Part shown: piece by piece, positions 2,012-64,000 of the stretch
How positions within the stretch are numbered: the stretch's first letter is position 1
Layout of the letters: each line of letters begins with the position of its first letter
The notes under the pieces: model-generated
Databases searched by the model: none
Seen by the model: the letters and a program-made list of their open reading frames with translations, nothing else
Told to the model about the DNA's origin: nothing
Program-made: the position numbers and the translations under genes
Source of the DNA: Orbicella franksi
Lineage: Eukaryota
Assembly (NCBI GenBank): GCA_964199315.1
Contig: OZ116700.1
Span: forward strand, 15,996,001 to 16,060,000
Reading direction: 5' to 3'
Length of the DNA: 64,000 nt

Positions 2012-2024
2012 TTTAGGTAATAGA

Positions 2025-2161
2025 TCAAAAACGAGTGCGAGTTTTTCATCAGGGGTTCCAAACACCGAGAAACAGATGAAAGCACAACGCCGAAGGCGGA
2101 GTGCTTTTATTGTTTCGAGGTGTTTGGAACCCCTGATGAAAAACGAAGCACGAGTTTTTGA
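2025..2161. repeat. Long hairpin (about 60-bp arms, 26-bp perfect core) at the Crypton 5' end
   Basis: GTTTTTCATCAGGGGTTCCAAACACC (2041-2066) is the exact reverse complement of 2119-2144. The loop contains a CGCC-GAA-GGCG mini-stem. Confidence 0.95.
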
Positions 2162-2338
2162 GCTGGCTTCTCAAAGTAGCATGAGAATTTTTTTCGAAGA
2201 ATAGGTAATTAGTAGGCATGCTCAATAGGCTATTGTCTGTTTTTTATTCATATGGTAAATGAAATGAATCTTTTATATGCGGCCATGTGGGCAAGTTTTA
2301 AAGGTTGAATTTTTAATAAATTAACATTATGCTGCGTG

Positions 2339-3680
2339 ATGGTGATCGAGTGGAGATCAGAACGTTTTCGAGTTCCAAAAACCTCTTCTCAAGAAAATGT
2401 TTTGGTGAATGATGCTGTTCCAGTTTCAACTAAGTATAAAAACAAGTGGGCTGCGAACATTTTTGCCGAATGGCAGAGGTTGAGAGAGGTTAAAGTTCCA
2501 GTATTAGATTGTGGCGGTCTCTTCAAGGACTACGATTTACACAATGTTACCGCTGTGAGTGTAGATATTGCTGGAATGGACGCTCTGTCACTGAACTATT
2601 GGTTGTCAAAATTTGTGATGGAGGTAGCTAAAAAGTCCGGTGAAAGATACCCTCCGAAGTCTGTTTATGGTATCATTTGTGCCCTCAAGCGTTATTTGGA
2701 GGAGAAAAATGGATCAGAAGCTTTGAATCCTCTGGACGCTAGTGACAAAAGGTACTTGACAACTTTTAGACCAAATTGGTTAGTAATTTAAAATGCACTG
2801 TTTCAGGACTTTAATTTTGTGTGTTATTTTTTGAAGGTTTGTCCTTTTCCGACGTTGCTTAGATGCCGAGATGAAGAATGGCGTTCGAGAAGGGCTTCAC
2901 ATCAAGTGTAAGAAAGAGGAAAAGGAGTTTGTGAGCGAGCAAGAAGAAGCAGTATTCTGGCAAAAGAAATTGCTGAGAACTACATCAGCTAAGTCGTTAT
3001 TGAACACGATCTATTTCTACAACGGAAAAGTTTTTGGGTTGCGGGGGGGAGATCACAGAAATATTGTTGTAAACAGCTTTGAAATTGGTCCAAATTTTAT
3101 TAAGTTTGAAGAAAATGCCTCTAAAACTTATCATGGAGGTCTTTGTGATCTAAAGTATGTGCCGCGAGTGGTCAAGCATGTTTGTCATTCTATTGAGGAA
3201 AAGCACAAGCCGTGCCTTGTTGAGATATTCAGATTGTATGTAGGGTTAGTTGAGACTCATGCAAAGGAAGTTACTGCATTTTACTTTAAGCCATCAAAAA
3301 CTAGGTTCGCATTCGATAAAGCGCCCGTAGGCATCAACAGCTTGAACAAGATTTTGCCTGACATGTGCGACGCGGCAGGCTTTAAACGCAAAACCGTTCA
3401 CAGTTTGCGCATTACTTGTGTTTCCTCCCTGTTCAATTCTGGGGTTGAAGAAAAATTGACTCGCGAAAGGTCGGGGCATCGTTCTAATGCATTGTTGCAG
3501 TACGAAAAGCCTACAGAAGAAAATGTGTCTAAAGTTTCAAAGATCCTAGGTCCAAGTGTTGTTAGTACAACTACATGTTTTACCACAGAGAAACAGGATC
3601 AATCTTTAACGGATGTTGTTTTCCAGAAAGGAAAATTCAAAAACTGTACAATTAATGTAACGATGTCTAAGAAGGAATAA
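2339..3680 (+). CDS. Crypton (DUF3504-like) tyrosine recombinase, 2 exons (2339-2751, 2837-3680), about 418 aa, no internal stops
   Basis: A phase-2 GT-AG intron (2752-2836) joins the two track ORFs in frame (DKR|FVLFRRCLDAEMK). Motifs: STKYKNKWAANIFAEW, YFYNGKVFGLRGGDHR (R), HSLR (HxxR), RSGHRS (H), LLQYEK (Y). Confidence 0.85.
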
Positions 3681-4139
3681 TATGTTGCTGTATTGTTGTT
3701 GTAAGCAATGATTTAAGCGGGAAAAATGCTGTATTCAGAATTATAATTAAGACTGATTAAAATTCAAGTTTCTTGATCAGTGTCTTGATCAGTTTTTGAA
3801 CTAATCTACCGTGTGTTGATCGGTATGTTCATTGGGTATCAACATACATGCACCTGACCCAATTGATGCGAGCTGATTGGGTCATCAGCTCATGAATAAT
3901 TAATGAGTTTGAGAAGGGATGTTGAAAAGCACTTCTGACCAAATACCTGGACTGGCCTCTGGTTTTGTCTAATTTTTCGAGAAAAATACAGAAAACTGAA
4001 AATAATTTGAGTTTTTCTTATCTAACCACTTGGCATAAATAGCTCTCCACATCTACTCACTTGGCCTTTCTGGCCTCATTTTCATGCGCTCAAATCCAGG
4101 CCGCTCCACGTGGTGGCCATTTATGAATACGGTGTATAG

Positions 4140-47449: not shown

Positions 47450-47680
47450 AAACATATCAAACACAAGAGATTGTGTTTTACCATAATTCGAAACACCGAA
47501 AAGAGAGTCAGTGCATAGCGGACAATTTTTGCTAAACGTTGAGGTGTTTAGAAATGTGGTAGAACACTGTCTCACACGTTTCATGTAGGGTCTTCGTCGA
47601 AATTTGAGATGCGGAGAAAATGGAGAAATGAAATCGTCAAAATCTATACTTAATTAAGATCTGATAACATCCAAACATGC
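47450..47680 (+). mobile_element. Decayed copy of the Crypton-related hairpin-plus-tail family
   Basis: ATATCAAACAC...AAACACCGAAAAGAGAG...GAGGTGTTT...AAATCGTCAAA, similar to 63433-63702. Confidence 0.5.
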
Positions 47681-56554: not shown

Positions 56555-57993
56555 TCCATAACATACCCGACGCGCCGACGAAGAGGTTTTTTTTTTTTCC
56601 AAAAAAATAACCCCAAAATAGCACAAAATATGATACTTTTTGCTGAATAGAACATCAGCAACTGATTACAGATACATTTTTCTAGCTACAGGTCCAAAAA
56701 CACTAGGAGCCAGGTGGGTCAGTTACGAAAATTGGGCAGAGCGAGACCAGATAGAATTTTGATGGGGGGTCGGGTGAAGAGATAATTCCGAGAATAAGAG
56801 TGAGTATTACAGTGTAATTCTAAACCGCATAACTGTTCTTCGCAGAGTGTTTGGAAAGAATCAAACTTAAGGTCAATCCTCACATTTGCATTGCGCATCG
56901 TCACTGCGCATAATTTATGGCGTTATTAGCCCGCGCTCGTGCACGCGCATATTGAAAACTTGACGGATTTGCCTTGATATTGAGCTCTGTTAGTTGAAAA
57001 ATGGCTCTAGTTCCCCAACGAGCATGGGCACACCAATTTTTTTTCCAGTCGTTGTAATCAACTAATCATAAGCTTTGCGTGAGAAAAGACTGATCTAATT
57101 TCTATTGCTGAAAATTGAATAAATAAGAAAAATAGCAAATACACTGTGGTCTTTTCTATTTTTCAGTCGGTAACCACGTCAAGAAATTTGGTTCAAATTT
57201 TTAATCAAAGATTTAGCTTTCTGTCTGAATCAAACTTACACGTTTATTTGTGGTCCGACACAATGTATTGACTGTGGTTTAATGCGTGTTCTTATGAGTC
57301 CGGGCTTACAAAGATGTTACAATTACTGGGACTGCGTTCTTATAATAAGCATTAAATAATGCAAAAATGGGGCATTTTCAATGCCTCACTGCTCCTTAAT
57401 GAGCATGGGCACCCCCCTTTTTTATTTCAAAATTGAAGTTATCATATGACAAATATTCAGTGGACAAAGTTTGAACAAAAATCTATTGTCACTTTTATTT
57501 CAGAGGAATTACCTTAAACTTCACTGTAAACTCAAAACCCAGGGCAAATGAATTTAAAACAACACCACTTATTTCTGTATCACTGTTTGGATCACCTCCA
57601 TAACATACCCGACGCGCCGACGAAGAGGTTTTTTTTTTTTCCAAAAAAATAACCCAAAAATAGCACAAAATATGATACTTTTTGCTGAATAGAACATCAG
57701 CAACTGATTACAGATACATTTTTCTAGCTACAGGTCCAAAAACACGAGGAGCCAGGTGGGTCGGTTAGGAAAATTGGGCAGAGCGAGACCAGATAGAATT
57801 TTGATGGGGGGTCGGGTGAAGAGATAATTCCGAGAATAAGAGTGAGTATTACAGTATAATTCTAAACCGCATAACTGTTCTTCGCAGAGTGTTTGGAAAG
57901 AATCAAACTTAAACTTCACTGTAAACTCAAAACCCAGGGCAAATGAATTTGAAACAACACCACTTATTTCTGTATCACTGTTTGGATCACCTC
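56555..57993. repeat. Tandem duplication of a ~396-bp unit (56555-57596 including an insertion; 57597-57993)
   Basis: Both copies start TCCATAACATACCCGACGCGCCG and end TGGATCACCTC. They differ by about 5 substitutions and a poly-T length change. Confidence 0.95.
56871..57513. mobile_element. 643-bp non-autonomous TTAA-specific (Kolobok-type) element
   Basis: TTAA|GGTCAATCCTC ... GAGGAATTACC|TTAA. The empty site AATCAAAC-TTAA-ACTTCACTG is present in the adjacent duplicate. Confidence 0.9.
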
Positions 57994-63174: not shown

Positions 63175-63422
63175 AAGTCTTACTCAGGCCAGCTGATCCA
63201 GACCGTCGGTTTATCCCAGTCTCACATGAAGCGGCTTGAAGAATTTCTATTACCCCCTGGTTGGAATGCTGGTCCATTTATACACCTAGGTGAAGGGAGG
63301 CACTGTGAGAGCGAAGTGGTTTTCCAAAGAACACAACACAGCACAGTGACTTCGGTCTGGGCTCCAACCCAGACCACTCAAACCGGAGTCCTGCGCAAAA
63401 ACCATTGGGCCATGGCGTCTCC
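63175..63422 (-). mobile_element. tRNA-derived SINE, same family as 17020-17221
   Basis: CCATTTATACACCTAGGTG..GGAGGCACTGTGAGAG...AGAACACAACAC core and a tRNA-like head on the minus strand. Confidence 0.7.
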
Positions 63423-63432
63423 ATCCAAGTTT

Positions 63433-63702
63433 GAAGTAAGATATCAAACAGCAGAGACATTGTTTCATCAGGATATCCAAACACCGAGAAGAGAGTTGAA
63501 AATACGATGCGCAGCGGAATATTTTTTGACGAAATTCGAGGTGTTTGGATAGCCGATGAAACACTGTGTCGAGTGTTTGATATATCTTCTCAATCGAAAA
63601 AAAAACTGAGGAGTAAAGGGAGAGGTAAAATCGTCAAACCTTCTCCACGGTTGTGATTTTCTTTGTTTTAATTTGATGAATCATTAATGATTTGAGAAGT
63701 AA
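63433..63702 (+). mobile_element. 270-bp non-autonomous Crypton-related element flanked by the 7-bp direct repeat GAAGTAA
   Basis: Its 5' hairpin shares TTTCATCAGG..TCCAAACACCGAGAA and TTCGAGGTGTTTGGA..GATGAAA with 2025-2161. Its 3' end GATGAATCATTAATGATTTGAGAAG matches the Crypton 3' end at 3892-3916. GAAGTAA at 63433-63439 and 63696-63702. Confidence 0.8.
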
Positions 63703-64000
63703 CAAACATAAATCGATGAAAGGCCCTTCACGTCAAGCGCGCCAAAACAGAAATAAAAATCTCCCATTGTGCTTTAATCGTTAATATCTAACGAAATCAT
63801 TCTGAAGTTTATTTTGGCTTTCTTTTACCTATGAAACCCATTTTCGAACGTCCCAAGCGAAAATAAAAGATGTACGAAATGAAAGGCGCGAGCCTCGCAG
63901 AACGGCGAGTTATAATTCTACCATACCGCTTTTTCGGAGCATCATTTCCCACCCAGGGAAAACACGTTAAAAACGTTTGCCTGGGTTTTGTTTAACTGTC

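Follow-up and report, generated by a model that had tools for sequence, protein, structure and literature searches.

Does the tyrosine-recombinase gene at the left of a stretch of coral DNA belong to a mobile Crypton and, if so, where does this element begin and end, what does it insert into, and how could its ends be recombined with a target? The stretch, hereafter the window, comprises 64,000 nucleotides of Orbicella franksi (assembly GCA_964199315.1, contig OZ116700.1, positions 15,996,001 to 16,060,000 of the forward strand), and positions are counted from its first letter. We found that window positions 2017-3915 are one copy of a CryptonA transposon of this coral, carrying a DUF3504-type tyrosine recombinase. 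Taken as a whole, the reading we favour, and consider likely, is that of a young CryptonA copy with fixed ends, no target site duplication (TSD), a palindromic target and a palindrome that spans the junction of the joined ends, presumably moving by way of a circular donor. To our knowledge, no order of eukaryotic DNA transposons is less well understood than the Cryptons, whose ends are notoriously hard to define; we know of no animal Crypton with described cis-elements, and of no Crypton recombinase that has been characterised biochemically.

2017 to 3915, + strand: whole Crypton element, 1,899 bp; 30 aligned genomic copies diverge outside G2017-A3915.

The ends were set by a search of the genome of the window (497 Mb) with the element and 50-bp flanks as the query. 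At least 33 near-full-length copies with 97-99% identity were found on 13 chromosomes, along with further older (86-90%) and internally deleted copies, and 30 copies were fetched and aligned for the boundary, frame and divergence counts. Similarity among these 30 begins at G2017 and ends at A3915, and their termini are invariant, 5'-GTAATAGATC...GTTTGAGAA-3', placing each true end two bases inward of the limits 2015-3917 proposed in a preliminary description of the window. Genome-wide, the exact left end word (a 23-mer) occurs 28 times and the exact right end word (a 21-mer) 66 times. A repeat search bore out the left-end hairpin and the lack of terminal inverted repeats in that description, the left and right termini not being inverted repeats of each other. 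A short direct repeat of 4-6 bp, standing at both termini and constant among copies, as in Cryptons of fungi, stramenopiles and algae, was likewise missing from the family, and the only base common to every left flank and to the right end is the A two positions before the crossover. Since animal Cryptons as published are without such terminal short direct repeats (PMC3212892), its lack does not exclude membership in CryptonA.

The 1,899 bp hold a single recognisable gene, consisting of two exons:

2339 to 2751, + strand: exon 1, N-terminal QRICH1-type domain (Pfam PF25561, E = 1.2e-10).
2752 to 2836, + strand: intron of 85 nt, GT..AG, with the frame restored across a split AG|G codon.
2837 to 3680, + strand: exon 2, DUF3504/tyrosine-recombinase catalytic domain (Pfam PF12012, E = 8.9e-13), stop codon at 3678-3680.

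Protein searches and models were run exon by exon. Joined, the exons (413+841 nt) give 418 stop-free codons, and the motifs GLR, HSLR, GH and LLQY were found in the translated open reading frame (ORF); the 418-aa recombinase frame of two exons, predicted to be spliced, with R, HxxR, H and Y motifs was thus confirmed to the letter, and the DUF3504 profile match, together with an additional weak Phage_integrase match in exon 2, upheld the earlier call of a Crypton-type transposon with an open two-exon ORF. Other ORFs of at least 60 aa matched no family, so the element encodes no reverse transcriptase (RT) or other transposase. Exons 1 and 2 are colinear with an annotated sea-anemone protein (P0051) over its residues 6-130 and 134-379, respectively, and the three residues between the two matches correspond to the split codon, F and V, a fit that supports the predicted splice. 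In an alignment of 22 relatives, R69, K96, H188, R191, H214 and Y222 (exon-2 numbering) were invariant or nearly so. Profile matches included human QRICH1 (E = 2.5e-9), the integrase 3nkh (E = 2e-6), XerA and XerH, with the HxLR...GH...Y stretch of exon 2 aligning with the solved integrase 3nkh, and an AlphaFold model (predicted local distance difference test, pLDDT, 78) resembled the folds of Cre, XerH, lambda Int and Flp. The C-terminal 40 residues were unstructured in the model, in line with the absence of a C-terminal DNA-binding domain that characterises CryptonA. As modelled, then, the encoded protein has the fold and the catalytic residues of a tyrosine recombinase, preceded by a QRICH1-type domain. 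Both exons are open in 22 of the 30 copies and the ratio of non-synonymous to synonymous substitution (dN/dS) between families is 0.15-0.22; judged by these sequences, the recombinase is intact in the family and under purifying selection. The family itself was recently amplified.

Having fixed the ends to the base, we compared the DNA on either side of them.

2012 to 2016, + strand: left target half-site, TTTA and a variable base, at positions -5 to -1; the invariant A is at 2015.
3916 to 3926, + strand: right target side, 7 variable bases and then TGAA at +8 to +11; T(+8) is at 3923.

A total of 44 independent sites were pooled (29 from young copies, 5 from older ones and 10 from a second coral), and the base at -2 was A in all 44 (p = 3e-23), that at -3 was G or T in 41, and those at -4 and -5 were T in 28 each. 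On the right, T stood at +8 in 40 of the 44 (p = 3.5e-16), C at +9 in 22, A at +10 in 31 and A at +11 in 29. The same held genome-wide, with A-N preceding 28/28 exact left ends and T at +8 following 58 of the 66 exact right ends. The target is therefore TTKA-N^N7-TCAA, two inverted TTKA half-sites separated by an 8-bp spacer, with insertion one base inside the spacer. Three paralogous unfilled sites of 75-82% identity (L001/L032, L007/window 57008-57406, and L015 internally) align gap-free across the insertion point, and nothing is duplicated or lost. The window partner in the second of these comparisons, 57008-57406, is a repeat 82% identical to the L007 flanks. If insertion is clean, the unfilled site of the window copy would read ...CATTTTAG|GGGATGTTG....

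The rule extends beyond the young copies. A diverged subfamily in the window genome (86-88%) follows it, and so does a sister family in a second coral assembly (ENA ERZ26692694), represented by at least 10 copies that are mutually 99.6-99.9% identical, with 88% protein identity to the window family and the same ends. In the window genome, about 30 right ends were without a full-length partner, one of them (L046) being truncated at element position 414; a bias toward 5' truncation, if common, would hint at a replicative step.

We then characterised the sequences at the two termini, which comprise the following features:

2017 to 2021, + strand: GTAAT, the first bases past the crossover; without variation among the copies, the diverged subfamily and the family of the other coral, and replaced by GTAAG in a miniature element.
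2022 to 2164, + strand: inner imperfect palindrome with arms 2022-2074 and 2111-2164 and the tip CGCC-GAA-GGCG at 2088-2098.
2167 to 2175, + strand: CTTCTCAAA box, two bases beyond the inner palindrome; exact complement of TTTGAGAA + G2017 (inverted repeat I15).
3767 to 3790, + strand: tandem 12-mers AGTTTCTTGATC and AGTGTCTTGATC, holding TCTTGATC (repeat search).
3855 to 3884, + strand: small stem-loop TGACCCAAT...ATTGGGTCA, arms 3855-3863 and 3876-3884.
3881 to 3915, + strand: conserved right-terminal ~35 nt, ending in TTTGAGAA (3908-3915); 94% identical between families.

The 26-bp-perfect left hairpin, the right TGACCCAAT/ATTGGGTCA stem and the TCTTGATC repeats of the preliminary description were all present. 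The hairpin arms, 2041-2074 and 2111-2144, are 34 nt long and 94% complementary, including the perfect run of 26 bp, and, as single-stranded DNA, the 164 nt at the left have a folding energy of -60.2 kcal/mol, compared with -16.9 ± 2.8 for shuffled sequences (z = -15.5). When the ends were joined in silico, they read ...GAGTTTGAGAA^GTAATAGATC..., i.e. GAGAA^GTAATAG; the circle junction had been predicted as GAGAAGG-TAATAGATC, whose letters differ from the GAGAA|GTAATAGATC of the joined ends, while the proposed likeness to the GAAGTAA core of a small element at the other end of the window holds for the joined ends and is in fact exact. In this joined form, TTTGAGAA + G2017 pairs with CTTCTCAAA, producing one hairpin of ~165 nt (-67 kcal/mol, DNA parameters) in which the join point lies within the basal stem, beside a 2-nt bulge. 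The junction-spanning palindrome was found in 8/8 representatives, namely three young copies (that of the window and two more), three members of the 86-88% subfamily, the family of the other coral and the small element of 263 bp. Comparison of the window family with that of the other coral gave 93% identity for the palindrome with its box and 94% for the last 35 nt, as against 88-89% for the exons, 78% for the intron and 67% for the leader, so that the strongest constraint falls on the termini.

The same architecture reaches a more distant family, L059 (62% protein identity; contig of ENA ERZ25068219, from another coral), in which the GTAATA... start, the arms, the box (as CTTCTCAA) and the terminal TTTGAGAA are retained; over its first 105 nt it is 88% identical to the window family, with synonymous sites saturated. 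An unrelated palindromic miniature element of ~200 bp (L059 1554-1760) interrupts the right arm of its palindrome. In a still more distant family (L067/L068, 53% protein identity) the TTGAGAA signature was absent, and its ends cannot be set from one locus. In two copies of the window family, L024 (C14:22.70 Mb) and L027 (C2:38.88 Mb), CGAGTGCGAG at the equivalent of window 2033-2043 becomes CTCGTGCTTCG, so that the left arm is the exact complement of the right arm and the palindrome is perfect (-81 kcal/mol); the change looks like repair templated within the fold.

A non-autonomous relative in the window delimits the sequences that may act in cis:

63436 to 63698, + strand: non-autonomous 263-bp relative with no ORF, the same ends and its own junction-spanning palindrome.

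A relationship between the Crypton and a small element at 63433-63702 had been proposed, and the shared palindrome and ends substantiate it within the limits 63436-63698. The first 158 nt of this miniature are 70% identical to 2017-2174, its fold has a z of -7.05, its palindrome keeps its pairing through 6 two-sided compensatory changes, and its box, too, is kept as CTTCTCAA. What it has in common with the autonomous element is limited to the palindrome region and the last ~25 nt, which marks these as cis-requirements; the cis-acting parts would thus comprise the first ~160 nt and the last ~25-35 nt. The small stem and the tandem 12-mers, being absent from the miniature, are probably dispensable in cis, and the TGACCCAAT/ATTGGGTCA stem is not kept in the L059 family either. 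At a first look, the genome holds at least 2,573 miniature candidates of 80-94% identity. The left flanks of miniatures were counted with a 14-mer, a word too short and too rare for a firm count, and had A(-2) in 11/18. A decayed miniature relative, starting GTAAGAAACATATCAAAC and 67% identical to 63436-63638, lies at window 47451-47641. Another copy, 13.7 kb beyond the window (C3:16073115-16073450), is 94% identical together with its flanks, indicating a local segmental duplication that includes 63386-63721.

How might such an element be mobilised? In the model that we favour, the recombinase would circularise the element by joining its ends, and the resulting junction GAGAA^GTAAT would serve as the donor site; the top strand would then be exchanged with a target that offers K-A-W just 5' of the cut, mimicking the G-A-A of the donor, and the palindrome would provide either recombinase-binding boxes (four TTTGAK boxes) or a folded version of this site. 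A single crossover point is common to all 46 copies, and the target spacer is unrelated to that of the donor. Two other models were tried and rejected: a 5-bp TTTGA shared core in the style of Goodwin needs GAA in every target and is misfitted by 2 nt at all three empty sites, and a Tn916-like coupling-sequence model is ruled out by the constant ends.

Several observations weigh against the favoured reading or parts of it. Between the perfect TTTGA and TCAAA boxes lie 11 nt in the joined ends and 8 nt in the targets, a misfit of register owing to which donor and target agree only at G-A-A^ / K-A-W^; if both strands were exchanged symmetrically, the overlap would have to be 7 bp in the donor and 6 bp in the target. 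Since the unfilled sites are paralogues rather than alleles, they constitute good but not final evidence of clean insertion. A head-to-tail junction, GAGTTTGAGAAGTAATAGATCAAAAAC, was sought in the assembly with one mismatch allowed and none was found, so that the assembly holds no tandem head-to-tail copies. The splice at 2751/2837 is a prediction from homology, and the protein of the window copy may be impaired, judging by its changes at near-invariant positions.

The misfit of register, the single class of junctions and a folding bias between the strands would together fit a more specific scheme, in which the donor is the folded palindrome of the joined ends, either a cruciform or a single top strand, and recombination with a duplex TTKA-N8-TCAA target involves one strand only, replication completing the event. 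We regard this scheme as possible, and put it forward tentatively. Measured from the base of the palindrome, the crossover is 9 bp in, beside the 2-nt bulge, and a two-strand exchange between heterologous spacers should give two classes of junctions rather than the one observed. In 8/8 representatives the fold of the top strand is more stable than that of the bottom strand, by 3-7.5 kcal/mol, and contains 2-6 G·T pairs versus 0-1; these eight, however, amount to only about four independent lineages, and the bias could equally reflect an RNA hairpin in the sense transcript. The top strand carries a GNA-type triloop at its tip both in the window family (C-GAA-G, 2088-2098) and in the miniature (GC-GCA-GC, 63508-63514), but this tip is not universal, as the ERZ26692694 family has GGCCG-CTT-CGGCC instead. 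The two copies in which one arm was converted to the exact complement of the other also speak for folding. Against this, the argument is purely structural, and the same palindrome would just as well yield two inverted duplex sites for a dimeric protein. If folding of the donor does take place, it would constitute a eukaryotic counterpart of integron attC and CTX-phage integration, and would explain how Cryptons gain copies instead of moving by plain cut-and-paste.

That the hairpin acts as RNA, as a structure of the 5' leader or as a source of silencing small RNAs, rather than in recombination, seems to us unlikely. In favour of such a role, the hairpin precedes the ORF on the sense strand, and in a transcript its G·T pairs would become G·U. 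However, it begins 5 nt from the end of the element, leaving no space for an internal promoter upstream, and its stem is completed only by the far end of the element. Moreover, the hairpin and the terminal 25 nt are kept in ORF-less miniatures, which spread by way of cis-acting DNA sites, and this retention makes a role as RNA less likely than one in recombination.

The preliminary description took the element to be 2015-3917, with a 3-bp AGG marking the crossover or a duplication. The letters do stand at both junctions of the window copy (2015-2017 and 3915-3917) but are confined to it: in register, AGG occurs in 1/30 copies only, no other copy has a matching in-register triplet, and in the 29 others each of the four bases occurs at 2016 and any base at 3916-3917. 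As these positions vary freely, AGG is not a repeat that the element makes or uses, and the paralogous empty sites fit no duplication; the alignment of the copies refutes this reading.

Nor does the locus look like a Crypton-derived host gene of the ZMYM/QRICH1-like DUF3504 kind, or an old, dead relic rather than a recently mobile transposon, an explanation we find extremely improbable even though database relatives are named 'zinc finger MYM-type protein 4-like' and the top sequence match among solved structures is human QRICH1, seeing that at least 33 scattered copies of 97-99% identity share sharp ends, that copies are only 3-22 bases from the family majority, that non-autonomous derivatives exist, and that the catalytic residues lost in domesticated genes are intact here (PMC3212892). 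The domesticated DUF3504 genes (ZMYM2/3/4, QRICH1 and KCTD1) are single copy with an incomplete tetrad, and this family is multicopy and young, with a complete tetrad.

As for the state of the window copy itself, it is complete in cis and its frame is open, yet it is among the older, more mutated members of its family. Of its 17 private substitutions, 11 are G>A or C>T, and most of its sisters are 3-9 bases from the family majority. Nine of the 17 are non-synonymous; two of these, G47R and I208T of exon 2, affect near-invariant family positions, and another exon-2 change, A187V, adjoins the catalytic His. The earlier wording 'potentially active' is overstated in view of these substitutions; with 17 private changes, two of them at near-invariant residues, this copy is not the best candidate for activity.

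To place the family among known systems, it resembles CryptonA elements such as Crypton-1_NV of Nematostella in having a single tyrosine-recombinase gene of the DUF3504 type with no C-terminal domain and no RT, in lacking terminal inverted or direct repeats, and in that its non-autonomous derivatives far outnumber the autonomous copies. For animal Cryptons no terminal structures have been reported (Kojima and Jurka 2011, PMC3212892). Unlike the published CryptonA elements, the window family has a palindrome of ~165 nt that is completed by its joined ends, and a defined palindromic target. CryptonF-1_cRei of Chlamydomonas was the first Crypton caught moving (Lopez-Cortegano et al. 2023, PMC9977147); CryptonF ends in CACCG, targets CAYCG, is flanked on both sides by a 5-bp shared core and has a GCR1_C domain (PMC9977147). 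Like it, the window family is site-preferring, has a target that resembles its terminal motif and makes no duplication; unlike it, the window family shares only K-A-W before the cut, uses a split-palindrome target with an 8-bp spacer and belongs to another protein group.

Further likenesses are found among bacterial and phage recombinases. The classical core site of tyrosine recombinases, as in loxP, consists of inverted half-sites around an 8-bp spacer, with exchange one base inside, and the window family agrees with Cre/loxP in fold, catalytic residues and target geometry. Cre requires identical spacers in both partners; here, by contrast, the target spacer is free and the donor boxes are 11 nt apart instead of 8. 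The integron attC and CTX phage attP(+) sites are bacterial, and their use as single strands with exchange of one strand has been shown experimentally. With these the window family shares an imperfect palindrome that holds the crossover, adjacent bulges, a constant crossover and no need for homology in the spacer, whereas its own fold and strand preference are in silico results. Integrases of the Tn916/CTnDOT type leave variable coupling sequences at both ends; the window family likewise tolerates non-identical overlaps and prefers loose, A/T-rich targets, but its ends are constant to the base.

Our search of the literature on Cryptons with a hairpin, a palindrome or a coral host yielded no description of a junction-spanning palindrome or of this target motif. 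What the present analysis adds is where the element begins and ends to the base, that it makes no TSD, which rule its targets follow, the misfit of register and the state of the window copy. The family thus supplies base-exact ends, a statistically solid target motif, a conserved donor structure and dozens of open gene copies, and its abundant miniature derivative indicates the minimal cis-requirements. Substrates for an integration assay, donor as well as target, can be designed straight from these data, and the mechanism by which a Crypton jumps becomes testable. The family is, furthermore, a living relative of the recombinase domain that was turned into the animal ZMYM/QRICH1 regulators.

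The window copy has itself landed beside another transposase gene:

455 to 2011, - strand: host ORF, transposase with THAP, HTH_Tnp_4 and DDE_Tnp_4 domains (Harbinger-type; Pfam), open, 518 aa.

An exact-protein look-up with this THAP transposase, made for an empty allele, gave no match, and elsewhere in the genome its paralogues reach only 70-77% identity. The Crypton is inserted 5 nt upstream of the ATG of the Harbinger-type transposase, and a paralogue free of the insertion is found in L032.

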